Below, in pieces: positions 30,670 to 64,000 of a stretch of 64,000 bases of DNA. The DNA is taken from positions 1,736,001 through 1,800,000 of the forward strand of contig JAMWBK010000006.1 of the NCBI GenBank assembly GCA_029953675.1, written 5' to 3'. The stretch comes from Rhodosorus marinus CCMP1338 (taxonomy: Eukaryota > Plantae > Rhodophyta). A model generated the notes under the pieces. The model ran no database searches and was not told the DNA's origin. It saw only the letters and a list, made by a program, of their open reading frames with translations. The translations under genes and the position numbers were made by a program. Position 1 is the stretch's first letter; each line of letters starts with the position of its first letter.

Positions 30670-33600
30670 ATGTTCAGAAAAACTTTCAAGGTTCAGAAGA
30701 GCAATCCGATGCGGTCTACAGACCGAAAGAAGCTCCGCGGACTCGTCCTGAAGTTGTATCCTGCCGCGGAGCCTGAAATCGACAGAATGATTCCCATAGG
30801 TGATGTGGAAGTCCTGGTATTAAAGCTGAGTAACAAGGTAATGCGCAACTCTCACTGCCAGCCCAAAGAGCAAAAACCAGCAATGTTCTCTTTGTAATTT
30901 GCAATGACTCATTCCTCCTTCGCGCTTTTCCGCTTGATGATGACCAGTGCACGGTATGGTCCCTAAACGTTGAACAAGGGCAACCAGCTCAAGGAGGGCT
31001 CGATAAGTTCGGTCAACCCATGTTCTTTGCCGCTCAATACGAGGAAGATAAGCTCGTCTATCCAACAGTTTATTCCTTGTGGATTGAACCGAACATGATG
31101 CCTGTGATGTTCACCCACGTAGAGGTGCGCAAAAATTTGAAAACAGCGATCCCTGGTGCTTGGTCAGCTCAATCATCTAGGCCAGGCAAGCTTGGAAGGT
31201 TTGCCGCTCCTGAAACCAGCTCCTGATACGGGTTACCAATCCCAAACTTTATCCTACGCTTCGAGAAGGTGAGCAGGTACATTTTTGGTGGAGCAGACTT
31301 GATGATGGCAGGCGTCCTGAAGCGAAGGAATGGTACATTTGGTGGAATGAGCAAAGGCCAGCCCCGTTGTATTGTATCGGTTGAGAACCCCCTTCCTTAT
31401 GCAGTTGGGCCCTTGCTTCTGGGAGAGCAGGAAGCTGCTGCGAGAAAAGGAAAAGCGTGAGTACCGCACCGTCGCTTCCGTTGATTCTCCCTTCTGGTTA
31501 TTTGATGTGCTCACGTACATTTTTTTGAACGTCGTAACTACCCCGTGTTCAGCCTCAAAGTTTTGCATCATTACGGTGACTCGCTTTGGAGTTTTGGTGG
31601 AGGATCCAAACCGAATGAGGGCTTTGAGCTTTCATCCATTCGACCTTTCGAGATCGCAGTGAGCGCTGAGGACACCAAAGATGCAGGACGTGATCTGAAG
31701 GAAGCGGAAACCAAGGGGCAGCCAGTATTCTCAACCGACCAGGATCGCTCAGAGGGTGTTGGAGAGCTCGTCAATCAGGCTGAAGGTCTGAGCGTAGAAG
31801 ATCAGGCTGCGGGTACGACCGACTGCCCCCCCAGCAAAGTGCTCAGGGTTTAGAAATGCTCACGTTCATTGCGACCATAGATGGTGAAAATAGGTTTCCT
31901 GAGTATCGCCTAGACCCCGCGCAGGTGGATGAGGATCCGGATCGAGCTCTGCAATATGCGTTCGTTATAACGGTGGGGAAGTTGTACAGGGATGGGAAGT
32001 ACCCAGTTGCAGCGTCGTGGCTGTATGAAGAGTACATCAAGCACATAGCGCCGGATCTGGATTTAGCGAGGACCGGTTCTAAAAACTTTTCCCTCTTTCT
32101 GAGGGCAATGTCTAAGCGGCATTATTGCAAGGTAACCACCCTAAACCTACGCATTGTCACTTTCGGGTGCAACCCAAGGCTCACATTTCTCTGTGTCGGG
32201 CTTCCGTTCACAGACAAAGGAGGTTGAAGGTGAACTTCAGCTGGCGCTCGTGAGTCTGAAGAATGTAGATGCTCTTGGGAAACAACTAGCGGCGGTGGGA
32301 TCTGACAACGAGAGCACCTGTGAGGGAGCCCAAACGGACGGGATATCTGCCGAGGATATGGACGATCTGCTGGTACAAGTCTTCATGCAGGCTGTACGAG
32401 TCGGTCTTGATCCTGAAGAGGATGCCGAGAGGTTTCCAATGGAGTCGAGTGCCTTCTACTCAAAGGTGCTTGTCTCGTGCCAGCCTCACGATCTCCCGAT
32501 CGATGTGAAGAAGTCTTCGTTCAAGAAGCTGTCCGCCTTCCTCAAGTACCTTGCCAAAGAAAAGTATTGCAAACTAAAGGAGGCGAGAGGTAATTCGTAG
32601 CCCCAAACTCCCACTAGTTTGTCGCTATATGTCGTGCGGGATTCGCGGTTGACATCTTCTTCGCCGGTGACGGTCTGTCGACTGGACTACAGGACAGACC
32701 CTGATCTTGGGAGTGAACAGAGAGCACTCGGACATCAAGAATTACAAACCATACGAAATGGGTTCGCAAAGAAAGCGGACTGGATCCACCCCAGCGTCTG
32801 AGGCTTCTCCTCCTAAGCTAGAAACTATGCTCAAGCCTCATCAGCAACAGGCCAAGTTATTTAAGGACATGAGCTACAATCCACAGGGAGAATACTCGAA
32901 GAAGACAGCCTCGGAAGTTCTTGAAAGGTACGATCGTCAAGCTTGTTGGGGACTGCGGCGGCACCCTGCGCTTGGATTATCTAAATCCTGATCGGAGCCA
33001 TGATCTTGGGTTTGGACTGGCAAACAGATACGTTCAAGAGCGGAAGTTGGTCCTAGAGGACAATAGGGACCCTAGACTTCGAGTCATCGTTGTGGATGAC
33101 GTGCTCATGAGATCGTTATCTAAGCCTTCCGGTGATGAACCGGAACAAGTTGCTAGTGGTGGGCGCACAAGCTTCAGAACAATTCAGGAGCGGTTCCTGA
33201 GTCGTCTTGAGATTTACTATGCAGTTGAGGCCCCAGGCGGTGGAAGGAAAGTGAGGAAAGGTGAAGTGCCAAAGGTCAAGGTAAGTTTGCTTCAGAGGGC
33301 ATATCCAGGTTTCTTGTTCGACGCGATTATATTTTCCTCGTGTTCTGAAAAGAAGCTTGTTGACACGTATTGACGGGCTAGGTTACTTGCGAAGATCGGC
33401 AAGGAGGTCGAAAGCATGTGACGAAATGTCATGGGATTGAGCTTTATGGAGTGGATCCAAAAGTGCTGGCGACTAAATGTCAGGTAGCCTTTGCATGTAC
33501 AGCTAGTACCCACGCGATGCCTGGAAAGAACAACACAGCAGTGGAGGTATGAAGCGCACTCGAACTGTCCACATGTTCGGAATTTTCACCTCGGCTAGAA

Positions 33601-47047: not shown

Positions 47048-48703
47048 ATGGCTGACTCTGTAGTTGATGGTGGTGCGGTGCCTGCACCTGGGATGTCTAT
47101 TGCTAATGCTCTGAACCATGCGTACATGAGAAGCATTGACTTTGTTTCCGGTACCCTGAACACTGCACTTGGCACTCTGGGAGGTGATAATCCGGATAAA
47201 AATATCTATTTGAAAGGGAGGTACGCACCGTTAACAAAACAATTTCATGAGATAGATTGCGAGCTCCTGGAAGGAGCGCTTCCGGAGTCGCTCAAGGGGG
47301 CGTACATGAGAAACGGGCCAAATGCTGCTTTAACACCGGAGGGCGGGTACCATCTGTTTGATGGAGATGGGATGGTGCATGCAGTTCGCTTCCGGGATGG
47401 GAAATTGTCATTCTCTAACAGATATGTGCGGACGAAAAGATTGGAGATGGAGCTCAGTCATGGACGACCCGTGTTCCTGAAGATCGGAGACTTTCATGGG
47501 GTGACAGGTCTTGGCAAGGTACTCCTAGCTCAAGCTTTGAGATACTTGAATATAGTGCCACCGCCTACTGGACTGTACCATACAGCGAACACAAGTATCG
47601 TATACCATGCGAAGAACGTACTAGCGCTTGGAGAGGGCGGAGCTCCGTACAATCTGCGAATGCTTTGCAATGGTATTGTTGAGACTCTGGGAGCAGTATC
47701 TACCAACATAGAAGGTTCCAAGTCCTTCACAGCGCATCCAAAGATCGACCCGGACAGTGATGAAATGGTGACTTTCGGTTACAACGTTGAAAACAAGCCG
47801 TACGTGAGAGTTGGGTTTGTGGATGCGGATGGTAACGCCGAGAAGACGATACTAGTTCATGGAGTTTCGCGGCCTGTGATGATCCACGACATGGCACTGA
47901 CGAAGAACTACGTATTCGTGTTCGACATGCCTTTGATTTTCGACCCGGCAGTGATGGTGAAGGAGAACAAACTGCCGTTTGCATTGCGTGAGGATATTCC
48001 AGGACGCTTTGGTTTGCTTAGAAGAGACGCCGTGGACGATAAGACGATGGAATGGTTCGAAGTACCTGGAGGCTTCTGGGTGTCCCACGAAGCTAATGCC
48101 TGGGAGGACGAAGAATCGAAGAAAGTTCACCTGGTTGCGATTAAGATTAGTGGATTTGACCTTGATAGCGTGTGGCAAGAGGAAGATAGGGAGAAACCTT
48201 ATCTAGCACACTGGAGCTTCGATCTCGAGAAGAAGGAGGTTACGCATCGGCGTCTTCTTTCAGACGAGGGTCAGGTTATGGAATTCCCTGTAATCAATCC
48301 GAGGTATAAAAGCAAAAAGGCCAAGTACGTGTGGGTTAACCTTGCCGAGCGGATGAATGATGACTACTACTTTGTGAGGATAGGGAAGGTAAACGTAAGA
48401 GCTGGCTTGCTGGACGCGGATGACGGATTGGAAGCGGTCATTCACCTTCCTCCGGGACTCAACTGTGGTGAAATGCGCTTCGTGCCCCGCCATGAAGATC
48501 CAAGCATGTGCGATGGCGAGGACGATGGGTTCTTGATCGGATACGCGCACGAAAATGATAATTCCGGTGCTTATTTTGTTGCGTATGACGCCAAAACAAT
48601 GTCTTCCAACATGCTGTGCAAATTCAGAATGCCAACGAGAATACCTTTCGGCTTTCATGGCTATCATATCAACGAGTCAGAATTTGTCAAGCAGCTCGCT
48701 TGA
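47048..48703 (+). CDS. Carotenoid cleavage dioxygenase (RPE65 family, CCD1-like), intronless
   Basis: GAYMRNGPN, YHLFDGDGMVH, four Fe-ligand His (FTAHPK, MIHDMA, VSHEAN, PFGFHG), GEMRFVPR...EDDGFLI. Confidence 0.94.
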   Translation: MADSVVDGGAVPAPGMSIANALNHAYMRSIDFVSGTLNTALGTLGGDNPDKNIYLKGRYAPLTKQFHEIDCELLEGALPESLKGAYMRNGPNAALTPEGGYHLFDGDGMVHAVRFRDGKLSFSNRYVRTKRLEMELSHGRPVFLKIGDFHGVTGLGKVLLAQALRYLNIVPPPTGLYHTANTSIVYHAKNVLALGEGGAPYNLRMLCNGIVETLGAVSTNIEGSKSFTAHPKIDPDSDEMVTFGYNVENKPYVRVGFVDADGNAEKTILVHGVSRPVMIHDMALTKNYVFVFDMPLIFDPAVMVKENKLPFALREDIPGRFGLLRRDAVDDKTMEWFEVPGGFWVSHEANAWEDEESKKVHLVAIKISGFDLDSVWQEEDREKPYLAHWSFDLEKKEVTHRRLLSDEGQVMEFPVINPRYKSKKAKYVWVNLAERMNDDYYFVRIGKVNVRAGLLDADDGLEAVIHLPPGLNCGEMRFVPRHEDPSMCDGEDDGFLIGYAHENDNSGAYFVAYDAKTMSSNMLCKFRMPTRIPFGFHGYHINESEFVKQLA

Positions 48704-49193: not shown

Positions 49194-52100
49194 CTACCAA
49201 TGAGTGTATTCATCCAGGAAACGTCCGAGTTTAAACTCTGGCTTTCTAGCGGCTCTGCGAATGAGGTACTTGCGAATCTCGTCGTAGAACAACTCGAACA
49301 GCGCGAATGGAATTCCTGGCAGCCAATGTACAAACCGGATTGGTGCAGTTCCTATGATCGTTTGGATGAACGGCACGTACGCGATGATCACCGCCAGCAG
49401 AGTTTCGAGGACTAGGCCAAAGTTGAGGACCCAGTTCCACATGCCTTGCTGGAAGATGGATAGTGTCCTTGTCTTCGTGATCAGTAGATCGCCCCACTGC
49501 ACAATGATGATTGCGACGAAGTAGGCGGTCTGTGCATGCCTCAGGGTCTGAGTTTGCTGCTCGCTGGTCCAGAGTTCGAAACATCCGGAATCTCCAATGT
49601 TGTCATTCTGTTCTCCGGTGTTGATTCCTGTGTAGTAAACAGAGCCTTCGTTCACGGAGCTGTCAAAGCAGCTCAAGTCGTTCTTCAGAAGCTCGTTGTT
49701 CACTTCACAGGTGAATGCCATGCATGATGGTTGCTGCGTCAGGAAGCCCACAATCTTGAACATATTATTGAACTGCTCGTTAACAGGAGTGCCTGGTACG
49801 CTCGCCAGAAGACTGCTTGACTCCACAGTCCCTGGCGTGCTTGGCAATTCATCAAACACCGCAGTCGTCTGTTGGATAAATCCAGTCGGAGGCTGGCTGC
49901 TGAAAAACTGGCTGAAGTCGCTTTCGTTGTTGAACCAAACCCTCATATTTGCAGCCTGGTTAAAGGAACTCTTCTGCGCAATAAGCCATCTCTGGTCCTC
50001 TTGTACGGACGTTGCGAAGAAACTGTTCACGTCCAGGTTGTTTAGAGTACTGGGGCTCAGGCCATAGTCGTTGAATACGATGAAGTACGCAAACAATCCC
50101 GCTAGGGCCTGGATGACTCCAATCTGGAAGTAGGCGAACGAAATTAGCTTCCTGTTCACCAGTCGGTCCTTTCCGGCGCGGCGAGGCTTCCTCTTCATGA
50201 TATCGTTCTCTGGCTTCTCATAGGCGAGGGAGATCGCTGGCACCACATCTGTTCCAAGATCAATCAGGAGAATCAAGAAGACAGACAGCGGGATTGGAAT
50301 GCTGATTAGAATGAACAACAGGAACGGGATGAGCTCGGGAATGTTGGATGACAGCGTGTAGGAGATTGATTTCTTCAGGTTGTCGAAGATAAGCCTGCCC
50401 TCCTCTACGGCATTCACGATTGATGCAAAGTTGTCGTCGAGCAGGATCATGTCCGCAGCTTCCTTGGAAACATCTGATCCTGCAATACCCATAGCAACTC
50501 CAATGTTCGCCTGCTTCAGAGCCGGAGAGTCGTTCACGCCATCTCCTGTCACCGCGACGATCTTTCCCAGCCTCTGACAGTTCTCCACGATGATCAGCTT
50601 CTGTTGAGGCGACGTCCTAGCAAACACGATCTGCTCTTTCGCAAGAATGCGATCCCAGTCCTCCTCGTCTAGATCCTTAATAGCCCATCCAGGTACTACT
50701 ACAGCTTTTGCCTCGCTATCGTTAACTTCATCAACACTACATCCACGCTCAATCGCAATGTCCTCGACCGTCTGATCCTTAATGATATTCACGGACTTCG
50801 CAATAGCTTTGGCAGTTGCTGGATGGTCGCCAGTAACCATGATGACCTGAATACCTGCTTCCTGGCAGGTCTCAACTGCGTATGGAACGGACTCTCTAGG
50901 TGGATCCAGCAGAGAAACCAGTCCAACGAAGCACAGCTCGCCCTCCATGATCTCATCGAGGAAGTTTTCGCGTTCCGAATCAAATTCGTAGTCGGGACCG
51001 AACTTCTCCGGCAACATTCGCTCAGCGAAGCCAAGAACTCGTTCTCCATTTGACATCAAAACTCTCAGGTGGGCATCGATGGTTTCCTTGTCCTCAGCGT
51101 TCATGGGTACCACTCCTTCAGACTTGAGCATACGCGTGCATCGGCTAATTACTCGCTCTGGAGCACCCTTCATGAGCACACGGAACAAGCCGGACTCCTC
51201 GTCCTTGTTTACGGTCACCATGAACTTGTTCGCAGAGTTGAACGGAACACCAGACACCTGCGGGTTGTTTCTTCTGATGGGCATAACCGGTTCCAACTTC
51301 TCAGCAAACTTGAGAATACCAGCTTCTGAGGCGTCTCCGTTCACCTTTCTCTCGTCTATTGGTAGCTCAGGGTTCATTTCCATGTCAGCAGCATCGAAAA
51401 CAGCTTTGGCACAATTTGTGGCACCGTAGAAGAGCGTCTTGAAGGCAACGTTCTCAGTGTCAATATCAGATTCCGTTGTGCTTGTCTTCGCCGTATGCAT
51501 CTCCCCGTCATAAACCAGATGAAGAACCGTCATTCTGTTCTGAGTCAACGTTCCAGTTTTATCCGAGCAGATTGTAGTCGTCGAGCCCAACGTCTCCACG
51601 GACTCCAACTTCTTTACCAGTACATTTCGCTTCGCCATTCTCTTCGCCGTCAGGGTAAGTGACACCGTGACAGTCGCCAGCAGGCCTTCAGGAACGTTTG
51701 CAACAATGATTCCAATCGATCGCACAATGTTCTGGATGATATCAGATGACCGGAACAGTCCAAACACGAAGAATATTACTCCCAAAGAAATAGCTACCAC
51801 TGAGATCAGAATTACGAACGAATGGATTTCGATTTGCAAAGTCGTCTGCGAGTTTCCTGAGGAGGCGGCCAGACCGGCAATCCTTCCAAAGACAGTTTCG
51901 TCTCCCGTATTTACAACAATACCTTTCGCCGTTCCCTCGACAGCGAGTGTTCCGAAAAACGCCAGGTTCTTCGTCTCGAGGGGATTTGCATCGGTGCATT
52001 CAACCGTTCGAGCGAGAGGCTCCGACTCGCCAGTCAAGGAAGCCATTTCCACCTTCAGTTTACTGTTCTCAATGATTCGAATATCAGCTGGAATCTTGTC

Positions 52101-52721
52101 TCCAAGCTTAACCTCAACAACATCTCCAACCACCAACGACGATGCTTCAATTTCCACAACGTTCCCATCTCTGATGGCCAGCGCCTGTGGTGGAAGGAAA
52201 TTCTTGAACTTCTCAAGTGTCTTTTCTGAAGAGTGCTCCTGGAAGAAGGTGAACAGGGCTGTGAAGATGACGACGAAGTACAGCACGATTCCAAGGTACA
52301 AGTTGTCCGTATTCTCCGGTGTCAGAGCATATCCAATAAATGAAAGAATCGCCGCCACTTGCAAAATGATGGCGAAGAAGTTGGTGAACTGGAGCAGCAG
52401 CTTGATATACCACGGCGTGACTTTAGGTGGAGAGAGCTGGTTTGGGCCATCCTTCTCCAACCTCATCTTAGCCTCATCAGAGCTCAGTCCAGTTTCCACG
52501 TCTGTGCCAATTCTTTCGCAGAGCTCCTCAACCGTAACTTCATGCTGCCACATCTCCACCTCCTTCTTCAAGTTATCCTGTTCGTCATCCTGTCCCTTCT
52601 TCTTCTTCCGCTCTCTCCGACTCTTTCGATCCAGTTTTTCCTCAATCCGAGCCGAGGTCTCAGAGAAAGTGCGAACGATCTCCAGGTCAATAGCATCCTG
52701 CTGATTCTTGTCCGGATGCAT
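49194..52721 (-). CDS. ATP1A: P2C-type ATPase, Na+/K+-ATPase alpha subunit, intronless, with enlarged M7-M8 loop
   Basis: TGES, IVANVPEGLL, CSDKTGTLTQNRMTV, GDASE, PFNSANK, KGAPE, MVTGDH, FARTSPQQKLIIVE, TGDGVNDSPALK, SNIPEL, IDLGTD, QWGDLLITKTR, C-terminal aromatic end EYTHW. Confidence 0.95.
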   Translation of the reverse strand: MHPDKNQQDAIDLEIVRTFSETSARIEEKLDRKSRRERKKKKGQDDEQDNLKKEVEMWQHEVTVEELCERIGTDVETGLSSDEAKMRLEKDGPNQLSPPKVTPWYIKLLLQFTNFFAIILQVAAILSFIGYALTPENTDNLYLGIVLYFVVIFTALFTFFQEHSSEKTLEKFKNFLPPQALAIRDGNVVEIEASSLVVGDVVEVKLGDKIPADIRIIENSKLKVEMASLTGESEPLARTVECTDANPLETKNLAFFGTLAVEGTAKGIVVNTGDETVFGRIAGLAASSGNSQTTLQIEIHSFVILISVVAISLGVIFFVFGLFRSSDIIQNIVRSIGIIVANVPEGLLATVTVSLTLTAKRMAKRNVLVKKLESVETLGSTTTICSDKTGTLTQNRMTVLHLVYDGEMHTAKTSTTESDIDTENVAFKTLFYGATNCAKAVFDAADMEMNPELPIDERKVNGDASEAGILKFAEKLEPVMPIRRNNPQVSGVPFNSANKFMVTVNKDEESGLFRVLMKGAPERVISRCTRMLKSEGVVPMNAEDKETIDAHLRVLMSNGERVLGFAERMLPEKFGPDYEFDSERENFLDEIMEGELCFVGLVSLLDPPRESVPYAVETCQEAGIQVIMVTGDHPATAKAIAKSVNIIKDQTVEDIAIERGCSVDEVNDSEAKAVVVPGWAIKDLDEEDWDRILAKEQIVFARTSPQQKLIIVENCQRLGKIVAVTGDGVNDSPALKQANIGVAMGIAGSDVSKEAADMILLDDNFASIVNAVEEGRLIFDNLKKSISYTLSSNIPELIPFLLFILISIPIPLSVFLILLIDLGTDVVPAISLAYEKPENDIMKRKPRRAGKDRLVNRKLISFAYFQIGVIQALAGLFAYFIVFNDYGLSPSTLNNLDVNSFFATSVQEDQRWLIAQKSSFNQAANMRVWFNNESDFSQFFSSQPPTGFIQQTTAVFDELPSTPGTVESSSLLASVPGTPVNEQFNNMFKIVGFLTQQPSCMAFTCEVNNELLKNDLSCFDSSVNEGSVYYTGINTGEQNDNIGDSGCFELWTSEQQTQTLRHAQTAYFVAIIIVQWGDLLITKTRTLSIFQQGMWNWVLNFGLVLETLLAVIIAYVPFIQTIIGTAPIRFVHWLPGIPFALFELFYDEIRKYLIRRAARKPEFKLGRFLDEYTHW

Positions 52722-54312
52722 GCACTTCCAAAATTATAAAGAAATAAGAAACTTCAAACCCGCGAACCACAACCACTTACAATCGATCCAAATAATCCAA
52801 GTAGCCCCAAATCCAAAACACACTCACAAAAACTCAATCGCGTATACTTAGTTCAATATAGTGCTGCCATCGAAGTCCAACCCAACCATCACTAGTTTTA
52901 TACTCATCACCAGTAACCCCACTGAACCTTCAGCTTCGGTCAGAGCAAGTTCGATCTAGGCTGAGCAGCAATGTTCGTCATAAGCAGAAATGTCCCTAAG
53001 CAAAAAAATACGCTTCAAAATATTCTGTTATACAATTCTCTCAATCCAATCATGATCCCGAATGGATTTGATGCGCCGCGGATTGTTCCTTTCCAGAAAT
53101 CCATTGGAAGCATTGACAAACTTGGCTTACTATTATTGGATAAAACAGATATCTCCTGATATCAGGAAAAAATGGATTTTCATGATTAAGAGAAAAGCAA
53201 GTCTATATTTGGCCAAATACCCGTTCGTTAAATTCATTACAGGAAGTTTTGGACTGCCAAAGTTTCAAAAAAATTACCTCATTTGTATTAAATTCAATGT
53301 ACACGTATTTTTATTCCTGAGCAGGAACCCGCAAACTTGAGGGGGGGTGAGAAATCCAACAACTCCATCTAAAAAGGCTAATTATTTAGAAATTAATGGC
53401 TATTTTCAAAATATAGGAAAATATAACCCCTATCGATGTTTATTGTATTTTATTCAATTGTACAATCTTTTAGATTATAAATTAAAATTGTTAATAATTA
53501 AGAGAGATGCAAATTACTCGAATATGAAGAAAATTAGTACAATCTAAAAAACATGCTCAAATAATTATGGATAATTGGTTACTTGTCGAGGTGGAATTTC
53601 TCTTCAATACAGGAGTTGATGAAATTCTGTCAGCTGAATGGCTGATAGCAAATATTGAATGTATTTCATTTTAAGAATCCGTTTGACAATCCATCTAGAA
53701 TCCATTTGGATTTCATCGTTGTCAGCTCGCTCACGAACGCTCAACGCACGGAAGCGATCACCTGGATCCTCTTGGGTGTCAGATGCTGAGTAGACTGGGA
53801 GTAGAGCGACATCGGCATGATTAACTAGTGACGTGCTTATCGTTTTCTCTGGAGCCTTATTGCGTGTCGAAATGTTTAAATGCAATTCTGAAATAGGATC
53901 ACGTCGTCAGCCTGTGATACATGAAACATGGTGGGAAAGCGCATTCCCTTCTCTGTCTACCTCTGTAGAAGCGCACAGCTAGTAGCAGCTGGCGGGCCTG
54001 ACGGATAGGCCTTTGCTCTTCTTTGACATCTCGCAGATGTGGTGACAGTTGGCTCTGGACCATTGGTCTGGGATGTGCAACCATTGCGTTTGGAATTGAA
54101 TTCATGTCCAGGGACCGAGCCCCGGAATGGCTTGTTATGGTCTGCATGTGCGTTCTTTGAAGTTTCCAGAATATTCTTCGAGTTTCTATGCCTCTATGTG
54201 AGACTTGCCGTGATCGTTCTCGCTGCTTATATCAGTGGTCGTTAATCAGAGCTTTGTTGAGATCGTGGCATGGTACAGATCAAAAGTATAGTTGTTTAGG
54301 ATAGGTAGAAGA

Positions 54313-54651
54313 ATGAAGTTGTCACGGCCAAGGATAAGTTCTCCAATTCGAAGGAATGATGAAGGAAGGGTAGCTCTTTTCGGACTCACTGGCATGGAGT
54401 GGCTCAAGGTATGTTGTTTTTCACATGGATATTCTGTTTCGTTGGATGGGCAAACACGTGACGTGCGGCTAACGATGATATGTCTAAATCGCTCTCCCTC
54501 TTTTCCGCAGAGCATTGTCGCGCTGCTGCTTCTTTACGTCGTGCTAGCCGGATTTTTCACTGGAATGCTCTTTGCGGGTACTGGCATTAGGTCCGCTGGC
54601 GGAGTATTTGAGCGCCCTGGTACGGAATTCCCTTCGCAGATTCAGACCTGA
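54313..54651 (+). CDS. Miniature Na,K-ATPase beta-subunit-like peptide (~78 aa; exons 54313-54408 and 54511-54651); an additional 5' exon cannot be excluded
   Basis: GT-AG intron 54409-54510 with GCTAAC branch point and pyrimidine tract; spliced product MKLSRPRISSPIRRNDEGRVALFGLTGMEWLKSIVALLLLYVVLAGFFTGMLFAGTGIRSAGGVFERPGTEFPSQIQT*; gapless match to the beta-subunit [11 protein letters not shown]...[10 protein letters not shown] segment (human sequence recalled from memory). Confidence 0.7.
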   Translation: MKLSRPRISSPIRRNDEGRVALFGLTGMEWLKVCCFSHGYSVSLDGQTRDVRLTMICLNRSPSFPQSIVALLLLYVVLAGFFTGMLFAGTGIRSAGGVFERPGTEFPSQIQT

Positions 54652-56141
54652 GCAAGATTTCTTTAGTACCAAGCAAGATCGTGCGGGCTCTTGAGACCAG
54701 CAGTACGAAAAATGATATGTCTTTTCGAAAGCGTATATGGCTGCTTCAATGTAGCACATAATCTCCGGTTTCGGCCGTTTTTTGTCGTCGATCTCTTTTC
54801 TTGTTAATAGAAAGTAAACCAAAGGAATGCTTGTACAGTATAACGAGACTTCGGGAAATCAATGGGCTTTTGCCTGAGGGCCATAGACAAGTTTGGGTCC
54901 GAGCTAGGCGCTCGACATCAACTGAGTTCAGACGGCCAAGCTAACAAGCAGCTCACGATTGAATTGATATTGTTGTAGAGGGTAGTCAAAATATGATGTT
55001 TTAAGCCGCTAGAACCTCATAGTGATCCAACCAAACACTGTTACATAGCCATGGCTAGCTTAGTTGTCGAACATTCAGGGATGGATTTTGTTTTTGAAAG
55101 TTGCTCGATCCCAACTATGGCGTCACCGAAATTTTTGGATGTTGAAGAAGCGGCATCAAGCGGGTTAACTCAAGTAAGCGTATTAGTACAGACAATGGAA
55201 GCCTTAGATATTTAGATGGAGTACATGGGAGCTGAAGCTGGGAAACTACGCAAGCCCGGCTCATGATAGAGAGCAGGGCATAGGTGTACGTCTCTGTGGG
55301 AAGGTCTACTATGGCATACAGGCCATGGAGGCAACGATAAGTTGCTCAGTCAACGAGTGAACCTGATGGTGGCCACATCAGGCCGTCGCGTGAGAGACAG
55401 ATACCAGTCTCCCACAATCCACGGAGTATCCGGACTAGAGCTACCAGATCTCAGGGAGCTCAGGGAACTCAGGGACGCTCGCAACCTGTTGAAAAAAGTT
55501 TGATGCGCTTGAGCATCATCGAATTCTTTCCAAACCCTATGAAGGAGGCAGTGGTGAAAGTCTTTTACAATGGCCAGATGACCACTTGCGGAGCCAGTGA
55601 ACAGATACATCTGGAGCTCAAGGGCCTCTTGCATGTGAATCATAATCTGATACGTACCTACTTGTTTTATAACAAAATCTCAAAATTTAGATCGGGCCAA
55701 ATTTTTGATAGCAGCTTATCTTCAAACTCAACTGATTACAATATATTAAATAAGTTAATTGAATATTTAGCCTTCTAGAAATACTGTTTCAAAAAACTAT
55801 TTGATCAAAGCGTCCCGAGATTGTTAAAATTGGATATTGTTAATTTAATTTTCAAAATATTTTGTGATAGAAGGATATTTTGGATCTATATTCTGGTAGC
55901 AATACTTTCTAGTTTATGAATTCTATTGTGGGTAAGAGCTTTTTCCGTAAGTTTCTGGATTCGTCTTCAGAGAGGAGAAAGGGGAGGTTTGTGACATACA
56001 TAGACGTCCGGTGCTTCTTTGCTAGTGGTAGAGGATGGGAAGGTAGGAAGTAAGGTTAAGAGAATGAAATCTACTGGGAAGGAGGACGTGTGATTTAAAT
56101 CTTGGGTTTTGAAGGGAGAGTATTTAGGGAAGAAGCAAGAA

Positions 56142-58302: not shown

Positions 58303-59550
58303 TTAAAAATTCAATTCTGGCTGGACCAGTACTCCAGAATCTTTGTAACCAAAGCTGCTTGCGAGCGTTGAATTGCCGTTCCTAAGAGCCTCTCCAACTG
58401 ACGTAACACCCCATCTATCCTGTGCGTAAGGATCCACGCCATGGTGAAAGAGTTCTAGTGCTATTTCCTCGTTGTTTTCAGCAGAAGCTAGGTGAAGGGC
58501 CGTCCTGCTATCGTAATTCTTCGAAGAAGGATCTACACCCTCCTGAATCAGTCTGCGGACGCTATCCAAGTCACCATCTCCAGCTGCGGATATGAGTTCG
58601 AATCCAGCAATCACGTGGGCCTGACGAAGACCTTGAATAATGTTTTCTCCAATCCCCGCTCCAAAATCGTGAAACGCTTGGACGACAAGATAACTCCCAG
58701 ATCCAAGAGCTTCTTGAACGGGACTGGATCCACGCCTATCGTAGCCGAATAGAAACACAAACAAAGAAGACATTATTTCAGAACAATTTTTTTTCTAGGG
58801 CTCCGAATGGGAGTCGACAGATGCAACTGCATACTCATCCTTGATCGTCATATCCGCTCCGGTTTGTAAAAGGTATCTGGCCACATCCTCCTGGTTTTCA
58901 GCGGCTGCAAGATGAAGAGCTGTTCTTCCTCCGTAGTTTCTGAAGTTGATGTCAGCTCCAGACGTGAGGCAGACCTGAACCATGTCCACGTTGCCTCTGG
59001 CGCTGTGCTCGATCATCTCGTTACTGACTTGCTCAGAACTCTTCACTGTAGTACCCCTATTGAGTCCTTCGTGCTCACCAGAACTTTCCTCGTCCTCTCT
59101 TGACTCCTTTACTGCGACCACAGTTACTGCCCCGCGTTTGAAGACTGCTAACGCAGGTTTCGACTGCTCCCGCTCGACCGAGGTGGCGGTGGCGGTGGCG
59201 GTGGCGGTGGCGGTGGCAGTGGCAGTGGCAGTGGCGGCGGCGGTGGTGGCGGTATTGGTGGTGGTGGCGGTGGTGGTGATGGCCGGTGTGGAGTTCTGCA
59301 ACTGCACTTCAATCGCATTTTTGACCTCCTGTTGGTTTGTCGCATTCAAGTTAAACTCCAGTGCTATCTCCTTCGACGTACTTGCGGGGGTGTCCTTTGA
59401 AGGATCAAAATTGAATTCAATCGCCGTCTTCTTGCCCTCGACAGGCACGTTCAACCTCAGCTTGATCATCTTTTCCAAAACGTCACCGGCCCAATCCTCC
59501 CCAAACGAGCCACCTTTGACTAAGAGTATTTGCGAAGTACTCTAAAAAAA
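58303..59550 (-). CDS. Ankyrin-repeat protein with a WNK/OSR1-CCT-like domain and an Ala/Thr-rich linker; upstream exons unresolved
   Basis: IKLRLNV...AIEFNFDPSKDTPASTSKEIALEFNL (CCT-like); ankyrin repeats NYGGRTALHLAAAENQEDVARYLL and NYDSRTALHLASAENNEEIALELF...DRWGVT. Confidence 0.7.
59181..59280. repeat. (GGTGGC)n / GGT-rich coding repeat (poly Ala-Thr on the minus strand)
   Basis: GGTGGC repeated about 6 times, then GCAGTG and GGT units. Confidence 0.85.
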
Positions 59551-61885: not shown

Positions 61886-64000
61886 CTAAGCCTGCATCGT
61901 GACTGGTCCTCGCACGGTCTGCTGCTGCCATGCGATCTGCGGGGTTTGAGTTGCCGGAGGCGCTCCTAGCATGGGTACACCACCTGTCTGCTGGGATTGC
62001 AGGCCATACATTAGAACGGATGCGTCTTCGTTGATCTCAGCCTCCCTCTCCTTACGGTCACGTTCCTCCAGTTCCTTTCTCGATGCGCTCTCCTCTTCGA
62101 GACGAACGAGTTTCGCGCCCACCTCGGCCATGTTCTGGACCATGTAAGGCATGGCAAAGTCCTTCGCCTGGTGTCTCCAGGAAAGCTCCAGGGCGGTTTC
62201 GGGCTTAAAGAATTCGTAACATCCGTACAGTAGTGCGGTGAAGCACTCTCTCCGCCTCTCTTTCAAAAACTGCTCAGCTAGCTGCTCAGCAAGCTCAACG
62301 TCCTTACTGACCTTAACCGCCTCAATACAGTCTATGTAAATCTTGTCCTTGGTGCTGATTTCCAAGGCCCGTTCCCATTTGCCCAGCTTTCGATATGCTT
62401 TGGTAGCGATTCGGCGCGCTTCCACAAGTCGGTGAGACTCGAGCGTCTTCGCCATGCCTGTAAGGTCAAAGTTGTCATAGCTATCAACTGAAGCGTCAAG
62501 TCCCGGAATGTCCTCTTCAGCCAACAAGACGCTGTTGACAGCCTCGTTTATCTCCCGAACGTTCGCGGCCTGCATCTTCAAGAGGTATCCCTTAACCATA
62601 GGCAACATCCCCAACTCCGTGAGATTTCCTCCCTTTCTCAGTATCGTAATTGCCCTCGTAGCGTCACATCGGTTTGCCAGCAGGAACATTAGGTCTAGCA
62701 GCAAAGTGGGATGCTCATCGATATAGAACTGGATTGCCTTGTACATCGTCTCCATTGATCCTACCCTTGAGACTGTGTCAGAGAACATATCAGGGTTAAA
62801 CGCATCTGGGGCATGGTCCATCATGACCCTAGCAGCGTTGTCAAACTCCTCGTATTGGAAGTACAAGTAGGTCGCTTCCAACCACAAGTAAGCCTCCTCG
62901 CACGCGGATACGAGTCGCGGGAGATGCGCCTTCTTCCACCACATCTTGACGTAGTCCTCGACCACTTCTTCCTTGTACTTGGTATAAAGCACACCGAGCT
63001 CGGTGAATAAACCTGTATGGGCTTTCTCGTGTACAAGCGCTGAGTCAAGAAGATCAATGACTTCTTCAAAGTAGCCTCGAGACTCGTAGAACGAGACGAC
63101 CTCCATCAGTTCGTTGGGATCTACGACAAGTGGAAGACCACAAATCTTTGCGAGTCTAAACTCCTTCGCCCGAACACAGCCGAAGCAGACAATCTTCCAT
63201 ATAGGCTGCCTGTTCGCCTTCTTCGCACACTCAACTGCCTCGTTGTATTCGCCAAGTTTGACGTAGACCTCAGCAAGGCGGGACCAGTTCTTCAGGATGA
63301 GGAAAAGTATCTTGGCACCAATCCAGATCTCCTCGTCATAGCATCGCTCGGCAACATCTTCAATGTTCGCTTCGTTTTTCCTTGACAAGAATTCTTCCAG
63401 TTCCATGTATTTGCGACACCGGCAGTATCCGTAGACGATCTCCGTATCAACCATCTTCAGATCATCCACCTTCCTTCGTGCTGCCAATAGGTATTTCACG
63501 ACAATACTGTACTCTTCATCCTTGGCGTGCTCAAGCGCAGCCGTAATGACCAGCGCGTATTGCGTTGGGTCCTTGGCCCTCATGAGGCACTTGACACCCT
63601 CCTCGATGACGCCACTTTCAAGCATGGACGTACCCAAAATCGTCCAGACCTCGGGGCGATCCACTTTTGCGGCGTACTCCGATGCCCGATCCCAGTCCTT
63701 GATATGCTTGATGAGGACCTCCATCGCCTCGTCCTCGCGATTGAACTTCTGAAAGATCGCGTATCCTTCTTCATACAGCTCCGCGTCGATGGCAATTTTC
63801 GCGACTTCACCTGCATCGAAGTTGTCAAGTCGATTGACGTACTCCATGACTCTGTCCTTCTCAGTCTTGATGGCAGTAAGTATGAGCAAATTCTGAAGGT
63901 TCTTATTGCGTTTGAACGCTGTACTGCTTGTGTCAACTACGAGCTTCTCAAGTAGCTGCATGAGAACCTCAGGTAGGTCCGCGGTCATGAAAGCCTTCAC
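61886..64000 (-). CDS. CHC: Clathrin heavy chain, C-terminal part (gene continues beyond the window)
   Basis: KAFMTADLP, LQNLLILTAIK, YVNRLDNFD, ALVHEKAHTGLFTELGVLYTKY, EEAYLWLEATYLYFQYEEFDNAA, FTALLYGCYEFFKPETALELSWRH...FAMPYMVQ. Confidence 0.97.
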   Translation of the reverse strand: MKAFMTADLPEVLMQLLEKLVVDTSSTAFKRNKNLQNLLILTAIKTEKDRVMEYVNRLDNFDAGEVAKIAIDAELYEEGYAIFQKFNREDEAMEVLIKHIKDWDRASEYAAKVDRPEVWTILGTSMLESGVIEEGVKCLMRAKDPTQYALVITAALEHAKDEEYSIVVKYLLAARRKVDDLKMVDTEIVYGYCRCRKYMELEEFLSRKNEANIEDVAERCYDEEIWIGAKILFLILKNWSRLAEVYVKLGEYNEAVECAKKANRQPIWKIVCFGCVRAKEFRLAKICGLPLVVDPNELMEVVSFYESRGYFEEVIDLLDSALVHEKAHTGLFTELGVLYTKYKEEVVEDYVKMWWKKAHLPRLVSACEEAYLWLEATYLYFQYEEFDNAARVMMDHAPDAFNPDMFSDTVSRVGSMETMYKAIQFYIDEHPTLLLDLMFLLANRCDATRAITILRKGGNLTELGMLPMVKGYLLKMQAANVREINEAVNSVLLAEEDIPGLDASVDSYDNFDLTGMAKTLESHRLVEARRIATKAYRKLGKWERALEISTKDKIYIDCIEAVKVSKDVELAEQLAEQFLKERRRECFTALLYGCYEFFKPETALELSWRHQAKDFAMPYMVQNMAEVGAKLVRLEEESASRKELEERDRKEREAEINEDASVLMYGLQSQQTGGVPMLGAPPATQTPQIAWQQQTVRGPVTMQA

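Follow-up and report, generated by a model that had tools for sequence, protein, structure and literature searches.

The window analysed here is a 64,000-nucleotide stretch of the genome of the red alga Rhodosorus marinus (assembly GCA_029953675.1, contig JAMWBK010000006.1). It contains a gene for a P2C-type (Na+/K+-ATPase-like) alpha subunit and, head-to-head with it as its immediate divergent neighbour, a short two-exon gene that encodes a 78-residue single-pass membrane protein, which we call mini-beta. Sequence comparisons relate mini-beta to the membrane anchor of the beta subunit of animal Na,K-ATPase. Textbooks and recent surveys hold that beta arose in animals together with the unicellular lineages nearest to them, and describe algal P2C pumps as operating without it (PMC9609216, PMC7911474, PMC10654040). 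A preliminary description of the window, made from its DNA letters, had proposed that mini-beta is a minimal beta-like subunit; here we examine the gene, its relatives and its neighbouring alpha gene, and weigh what the protein may do.

The mini-beta gene is spliced and expressed

The features of the locus are collected in Table 1. The first exon of the mini-beta gene codes for a basic cytoplasmic tail, the juxtamembrane motif G-x-T-x-x-E-W and the first part of the transmembrane helix, while the second codes for the remainder of the helix (Y41, LAG, F48), an invariant R59, an R-P-G motif and a short extracellular tail. The intron that separates them begins with GTATGT and ends with CAG, and contains a branch-like site, in the sequence GGCTAAC, ~38 nt 5' of the 3' splice site, followed by a pyrimidine tract. 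Its length is a multiple of three and it is free of stop codons, so the unspliced frame is also open and would yield 112 residues. Splicing is well supported, because the NCBI gene model NDN08_000784 (a hypothetical protein) is exactly the spliced 78-residue product, and because P0153, an open reading frame (ORF) from the MMETSP transcriptome of another R. marinus strain that is identical to the window peptide at 68 of 78 residues, reads ...GMEWLK-SLVALL... across the junction without the 34 intron-encoded residues. In addition, an insertion at the intron position is found in none of 27 relatives, and the spliced product has a Pfam match but the 112-residue read-through has none. A length of 102 nt is a normal intron size here, since a nearby RRM gene, on the most sensible of its 18 GT-AG solutions, has one intron of 84 nt and another of 178 nt.

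P0153 also carries a 60-residue N-terminal extension. Matching it to the DNA that precedes the ATG requires a jump between two reading frames, and stops occur in that DNA; a minimum of ~180 nt before the start codon is therefore transcribed and non-coding. Between the two R. marinus strains the DNA of this segment (54130-54312) is well conserved and its reading frame is not. The segment is open by chance in the MMETSP strain, which gives rise to a spurious 138-residue ORF in UniProt (A0A7S0G0E9).

Exons that might encode an ectodomain were sought downstream of the gene, and none was found, as all three frames from 54652 to 56141 are full of stops. Mini-beta is thus a genuine, spliced and expressed gene for a short single-pass membrane protein. 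The preliminary description had read the same structure from the DNA, namely a clean 102-bp GT-AG intron, a ~78-residue product with one transmembrane segment and a stop in place of an ectodomain of ~240 residues, and the gene model, the transcript and the stop-ridden downstream frames agree with it on each point. The 54408/54511 junction, which it had wished to see confirmed in RNA, is exactly where the transcript-derived ORF of the sister strain is joined. That the coding sequence stops ~20 residues past the membrane helix, when animal betas go on for ~240 residues, might also be taken to mean that the gene is a functionless, decaying remnant of a once full-length beta gene (a pseudogene or an annotation artefact), but we consider this highly improbable. 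Relatives of similar short length share invariant residues in six red-algal classes, transcripts are present in several species, the sister-strain orthologue has an intact frame that stops at the same position, and the downstream DNA holds no ectodomain-like coding remnants.

Table 1. Coordinates of the mini-beta and alpha genes and their parts in the window.
Feature	Position	Strand	Details	Basis
Mini-beta gene	54313-54651	+	two exons; ATG at 54313, TGA ends 54651	
Exon 1	54313..54408	+	residues 1-32	sequence, NCBI model NDN08_000784, family conservation
Intron	54409..54510	+	GT-AG, 102 nt	sequence, transcript ORF P0153 joined K32/S33
Exon 2	54511..54651	+	residues 33-78 and stop codon	sequence, family conservation, AlphaFold2 model
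Beta-homologous core	54367..54576	+	~residues 19-54, split by intron	alignments to PF00287 22-54 and PDB beta chains
5' untranslated region of mini-beta gene	54130..54312	+	minimum extent	P0153 N-terminal extension
Divergent intergenic region	52722..54129	.	alpha start to mini-beta 5' untranslated region	no annotated gene
P2C-type (Na+/K+-ATPase-like) alpha gene	49194..52721	-	1175 residues, single exon	Pfam domains, animal alpha matches
M7-M8 loop insert of alpha	49584..50027	-	~147 residues, alpha residues ~899-1046	alignment gap relative to animal alphas

Mini-beta belongs to a family of short red-algal proteins

A phmmer search of 1.84 billion representative proteins (E <= 1e-3) with the window peptide recovered 27 relatives, the best at E 1.1e-14 and nearly all 71-121 residues long (47-121 without the read-through artefacts). 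Only this exhaustive HMMER search brought them to light, as a word-index homologue search with the single peptide returned only the peptide itself. Every member with a named source comes from a red alga, and six classes are represented; the sources are Porphyra umbilicalis, Pyropia vietnamensis, Porphyridium purpureum, Compsopogon caeruleus, Chondrus crispus, Rhodella violacea and R. marinus itself, which has a second paralog. Several members derive from MMETSP transcriptomes of several species. The named members are labelled hypothetical, unnamed or uncharacterised in all cases but one (the R. marinus paralog, 'Copper transporter'), and literature searches found no earlier description of them. 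The conserved red-algal orthologs that the preliminary description had called for thus exist, and this family of roughly 70-120-residue proteins across red algae is previously undescribed.

The family has the consensus ..P..NP...R.DG.....GLT..EW.....AL..LY..LAGFF..LL.IA.AIR.....F.RPG. in which E29 and R59 do not vary and W30 and F48 are almost invariant; the conserved core comprises G24, T26, E29, W30, Y41, F48 and R59, plus R67-P68-G69. Along the helix, L37, Y41, L44, F48, L51/52 and A55 form a conserved stripe, which fits helix-helix packing without identifying the partner.

The second R. marinus member, NDN08_001278 (L013 10001-10231, contig JAMWBK010000005.1), is 76 residues long, intronless and unlinked to either alpha gene. 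Its UniRef name, 'Copper transporter', seems to be a misannotation, as PF00287, the beta-subunit family, is the sole Pfam family to give a signal. Five entries of 83-152 residues (P0132, P0138, P0139, P0146 and P0148) are evidently mispredictions caused by intron read-through: they diverge directly after '...IRNxxDF', and two of them rejoin at '...PGS/T'. The annotated Chondrus crispus gene (L014 10001-10349) has a ~100-nt intron at that very point, a position different from that of the R. marinus intron. Intron positions in the family therefore vary by lineage, and two copies, that of Porphyridium and the second one of R. marinus, have no intron. The C-terminal tail also varies, as it reaches 25-45 residues with two or four cysteines (e.g. 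CLPGDFGC...C...C) in P0128, P0144, P0155, P0156 (L009-L011) and P0133-P0136. These longer tails are probably small disulfide-bonded ecto-tails, judging from their cysteines, which would make 'ectodomain-less' a matter of degree across the family.

The family is related to the membrane anchor of beta

When the window peptide was compared with Pfam (24,736 models), its only match was PF00287 (E 0.032, 13.8 bits), and the alignment is in register, with window residues 21-53 lying against profile positions 22-54. Similarly, its best match among 177,635 PDB sequences is the Artemia Na,K-ATPase beta-2 subunit (E 0.0035, 14 of 32 residues identical, ungapped), and four of the seven matches in this search are beta subunits. 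The preliminary description had counted 11 of 29 ungapped identities to residues F24-G52 of human ATP1B1; a recount gives the same figure, and the Pfam and PDB comparisons point in the same direction.

The relationship becomes clearer when the family is used in place of the single peptide. A profile of the 28 family sequences retrieved 15 PDB matches at E <= 10, all of which are Na,K-ATPase beta subunits, and a trimmed version of the profile retrieved 21, of which 20 are Na,K beta-1, -2 or -3 or gastric H,K beta (best match E 1.7e-6, 30.5 bits). As a control, the profile of reversed sequences retrieved five unrelated proteins and no beta subunit, with a best E of 0.034. Scanned singly against Pfam, 20 of the 28 members match PF00287, and no other Pfam family is matched by more than two of them. 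In the 17 PF00287 matches that were inspected individually, all fall at profile positions ~16-74 and 16 end by position 61. One member, P0136, exceeds the PF00287 gathering cut-off (24.7 bits against 23.3); it is itself tied to the window peptide at E 2e-5 in the search of 1.84e9 proteins. Overall, the beta-homologous core of mini-beta pairs with beta-subunit residues ~21-55. The polar juxtamembrane stretch aligns, with K-E-F-x-G-R-T-G-x-S-W in animals and K-E-F-x-G-L-T-x-x-E-W in the algae, and is followed in both by the Y and L-A-G-x-F of the helix. On the strength of these alignments, the mini-beta family is homologous to the N-terminal juxtamembrane stretch and transmembrane helix of beta, without its ectodomain.

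The likeness could instead be convergent or fortuitous, in which case mini-beta would be an unrelated small membrane protein, such as a subunit of another complex, that lies next to the alpha gene by coincidence. The match indeed covers a short stretch of mainly hydrophobic residues, most individual scores do not reach the Pfam threshold, alpha is linked at a single locus, and Foldseek is unable to discriminate a single helix. Against this stand a forward profile that picks almost only beta subunits from 177,635 sequences when the reversed profile picks none, and shared positions that include the polar motif K/E-F-x-G-x-T-G-x-x-W. The 17 inspected matches share the same register from the N-terminus, one member passes the curated Pfam cut-off, and the adjacency to a P2C alpha gene is independent of all these comparisons and has an estimated chance of ~1e-3. 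We therefore judge a convergent origin to be improbable.

It follows from the relationship of the red-algal family to the beta anchor that a beta-like protein occurs outside the Holozoa. The preliminary description had placed one outside the Metazoa, and the retrieval of beta subunits by the family profile, when the reversed control retrieves none, bears it out. Its companion statement, that beta subunits are generally regarded as animal-specific, needs correction, as the literature places the origin of beta in the Holozoa, and hence not strictly in animals, and finds the SYGQ motif absent outside choanoflagellates and animals (PMC9609216).

Mini-beta is predicted to have the topology of beta

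The distribution of charge about the helix is asymmetric in the family, with a mean net charge of +2.25 in the N-terminal flank compared to -0.18 in the C-terminal flank, and the N-terminal flank is the more positive in 22 of 28 members. The C-terminal tails of several relatives contain paired cysteines (two or four), which suggests an oxidising, extracellular location for this end of the protein. In the AlphaFold2 model of the window peptide a small hairpin precedes one long helix that spans residues 27-61, and the block-mean predicted local distance difference test (pLDDT) score is 94-99 over residues 31-60. Mini-beta is thus predicted to be a type II single-pass protein whose N-terminus is cytoplasmic and whose C-terminus is outside, as in beta. 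The length of the N-terminal tail is similar in the two proteins, as the preliminary description had stated. A Foldseek search with the peptide model gave no discrimination, as the model is a single helix.

The neighbouring alpha gene encodes a pump with an insert in the M7-M8 loop

The alpha gene next door matches the structures of animal alpha1-3 at E=0, is 54% identical to animal Na,K-ATPase alphas, contains all of the P-type domains and has red-algal orthologues that include the Pyropia yezoensis Na+-ATPase. At the beta-docking site it reads DSGCFELWTSEQQ where animal alphas have DSYGQQWTYEQRK (the SYGQ motif), and DSGCFELWTSEQQ is preceded by an insert within the extracellular M7-M8 loop, where the beta ectodomain docks in animal pumps. 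The insert is common to dozens of red-algal alphas of 1150-1195 residues, and in an alignment of 44 sequences it contains three invariant cysteines and a fourth that is conserved in at least 90%. AlphaFold2 models it as a compact alpha/beta domain (pLDDT 90.8, predicted template modelling score 0.87).

We considered whether the insert is a transplanted beta ectodomain and found no support for such a homology, since a Foldseek search of PDB with the confident model returned no significant match (best E 2.7, template modelling score <= 0.2) and no beta chain. The insert may instead be an undescribed fold, and it is unlike the beta ectodomain. A beta-like M7-M8 insert was reportedly first noted for the Heterosigma Na+-ATPase. 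Algal pumps are described as having no typical beta, and the M7-M8 insert has been proposed as a beta equivalent, a proposal for which there is no experimental support (PMC7911474).

The start codons of the two genes are separated by 1,591 bp, in keeping with the ~1.6 kb and the divergent transcription noted in the preliminary description. The intergenic region between them, in which no regulatory element was identified, presumably holds the promoters of both genes. R. marinus has two P2C alphas and two mini-beta paralogs, and with at least ~7,900 genes (by locus tags) we estimate the probability of a chance adjacency at ~1e-3. By this estimate the adjacency is unlikely to have arisen by chance, yet it is a single observation.

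The other genes of the neighbourhood are an ordinary housekeeping context without obvious link to a pump: an RPE65-family carotenoid oxygenase lies just downstream of the alpha gene (47048-48703, +), and a clathrin heavy chain gene reaches the end of the window (61886-64000, -). Between mini-beta and the clathrin gene lies a gene of 355 residues (58303-59469, -) that has no Pfam match on record and contains a long low-complexity Thr/Ala run, ...TTTATTTNTATTAAATATATATATATATATATS..., derived from a simple repeat.

Comparison with known pump subunits

Mini-beta shares with ATP1B1-3 and ATP4B (PF00287) its type II single-pass orientation, the length of its N-terminal tail, a conserved transmembrane tyrosine and the sequence L-A-G-x-F, and it is encoded beside a P2C alpha gene. 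The juxtamembrane motif is E-F-x-G-x-T-G-x-x-W in animal beta and G-L-T-x-x-E-W in mini-beta; the residue equivalent to Ser31 of beta-1 is an invariant glutamate in mini-beta, which also has an invariant arginine just after the helix. The main differences lie outside the membrane. Canonical beta has a ~240-residue glycosylated ectodomain with three disulfides, whereas only ~20 residues follow the helix in mini-beta, or 25-45 with 2-4 cysteines in some relatives. The two proteins also differ in the taxa that carry them (red algae as opposed to Holozoa) and in their actual or putative alpha partner, which has the SYGQ docking motif in animals and, in R. marinus, a loop insert of its own and no SYGQ. 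With no ectodomain and a putative partner alpha that is without SYGQ, mini-beta is not a canonical beta subunit; it does have the sequence relationship to the beta anchor and the predicted topology.

Mini-beta may also be compared with small partners of P-type ATPases. FXYD (gamma) proteins are likewise small, single-pass accessory proteins of P2C pumps and, as is probable for mini-beta, modulators. However, they are type I proteins (N-terminus outside) that carry the FXYD motif and bind near M9, whereas mini-beta is predicted to have the opposite topology, its sequence has no FXYD motif, and a match to the FXYD family in Pfam was found for none of the 28 members. Sarcolipin, phospholamban and the other micropeptides of SERCA, as well as KdpF of the Kdp-ATPase, are short single-helix partners that modulate or stabilise P-type ATPases; sarcolipin, phospholamban and KdpF bind different grooves on different pump subfamilies, and no sequence relationship to them was detected in the Pfam and PDB searches of mini-beta. 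According to a 2023 review, the accessory subunits of P2C pumps are glycosylated beta and FXYD only (PMC10654040). The proposal that the M7-M8 insert acts as beta (PMC7911474) likewise addresses how these algal pumps manage without a canonical beta, and the insert is present here as well. That proposal places the whole of beta function inside alpha with no separate subunit, whereas at this locus a separate homologue of the beta anchor is found too.

Proposed role of mini-beta

We think it probable that mini-beta is an ectodomain-less homologue of the P2C beta subunit whose helix sits on M7/M10 of alpha, that the insert caps the loop, and that the effect of mini-beta is likely modulatory; the homology comes from the profile comparisons, and from it we infer the binding, its site and its effect. 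The mini-beta helix would pack against M7/M10 of a red-algal P2C alpha, as the beta helix does in animal pumps, via its conserved stripe L37-Y41-L44-F48-L51/52-A55, while the G-x-T-x-x-E-W motif, together with the basic tail that the family conserves, would lie at the cytoplasmic membrane surface. The ~147-residue disulfide-containing insert of alpha would cap and stabilise the M7-M8 loop in cis, as the beta ectodomain does in animals. The outcome could be a stabilisation of the C-terminal membrane hairpins of alpha, a tuning of its cation affinity (E1/E2 balance), or both, and mini-beta would then be modulatory rather than strictly essential.

A number of observations weigh against this reading. 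At 13.8 bits the window peptide falls below the PF00287 gathering cut-off of 23.3 in the profile comparison that the preliminary description had proposed. The likeness to beta spans only ~35 residues that belong largely to a hydrophobic helix, and of the two transmembrane tyrosines by which beta-1 contacts alpha in animal pumps, only one is kept in the family. Two residues emphasised in the preliminary description, Lys32 and the second glycine of 'GxxxG', are peculiar to the window copy and not conserved in the family. On the side of alpha, the SYGQ beta-docking motif is missing, and the fold of the insert is unlike that of the beta ectodomain, such that an 'ectodomain in cis' is a functional analogy only. 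Linkage of the motif to P2C genes, which the preliminary description had proposed to look for, was found at this locus alone, and its suggestion that mini-beta is co-regulated with alpha is weakened accordingly. No mini-beta was found in the flanking DNA retrieved for another four red-algal alpha genes (L002-L008), that of the R. marinus paralog among them, by tblastn and motif regular expressions followed by a family hidden Markov model run over six-frame translations. Conversely, no alpha lies within +-10 kb (or the whole of a shorter contig) of four other family members, which include the second R. marinus copy and those of Porphyridium and Chondrus. A weak match to the family model at 33422-33484 of the window was dismissed as noise, as no helix follows it. 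Finally, red-algal alphas that were expressed in rice, Chlamydomonas, yeast and E. coli function with no partner alongside them, and PyKPA1 and PhNKA2 function alone in such heterologous hosts (PMC12066774, PMC7911474). An obligatory beta-like chaperone role is unlikely for this reason. The yeast two-hybrid system in which partners of PhNKA2 were screened is a nuclear one, and only soluble proteins were reported from it.

The chaperone role of beta in the biogenesis of animal Na,K-ATPase is mediated by its ectodomain, the very part that mini-beta is without. This leads to a related explanation, in which mini-beta is a true homologue of the beta anchor but an optional micropeptide regulator similar to FXYD proteins or to sarcolipin and phospholamban, not needed for the assembly or trafficking of alpha, and altering ion affinity or turnover in certain circumstances, of which salinity is an example. 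The evidence for homology to beta serves it equally, the presence of two mini-betas and two alphas in R. marinus leaves room for isoform-specific tuning, and alpha expressed by itself confers Na+ efflux and salt tolerance on heterologous hosts (PMC12066774, PMC7911474). It differs from the preferred reading only in how essential the subunit is, and the present data fit both. However, strong conservation over six red-algal classes speaks for a core role more than for a conditional one, and we regard a purely optional regulator as unlikely, if less so than convergence.

The preferred reading, that of a modulatory, ectodomain-less beta homologue, leaves room for two histories. In the first, a peptide that is a membrane anchor only, packing on M7/M10, would be the original 'beta', and the alpha/beta architecture would predate the animal lineage; red algae would then have retained this peptide and grown an ectodomain inside the M7-M8 loop of alpha, and holozoans on beta, as two independent solutions to capping the loop. 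We offer this order of events tentatively and think it rather doubtful. Its mirror image is an ancient transfer of a holozoan alpha and beta pair into red algae, which may have been followed by truncation of beta. An ancestral anchor and a secondarily truncated import may each account for the data, which fit both alike.

Implications for red-algal and animal pumps

Mini-beta provides a natural 'minimal beta' with which the roles of the membrane helix may be told apart from those of the ectodomain, and it bears on what the insert in the alpha loop might compensate for. Its presence is also relevant to work in which red-algal pumps have been moved into plants and algae for salt tolerance, always without mini-beta; if it is true that mini-beta stabilises or tunes the pump, then its co-expression could change the salt-tolerance outcome. 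More generally, proteins of fewer than 100 residues, which are routinely dropped by the ORF callers applied to transcriptomes, can hide subunits of well-studied machines. For the P2C pumps, a conserved red-algal homologue of the beta anchor raises anew when and how the pump came to have two subunits, as the partnership of alpha with a beta-like protein may be much older than has been held, or may have been transferred.

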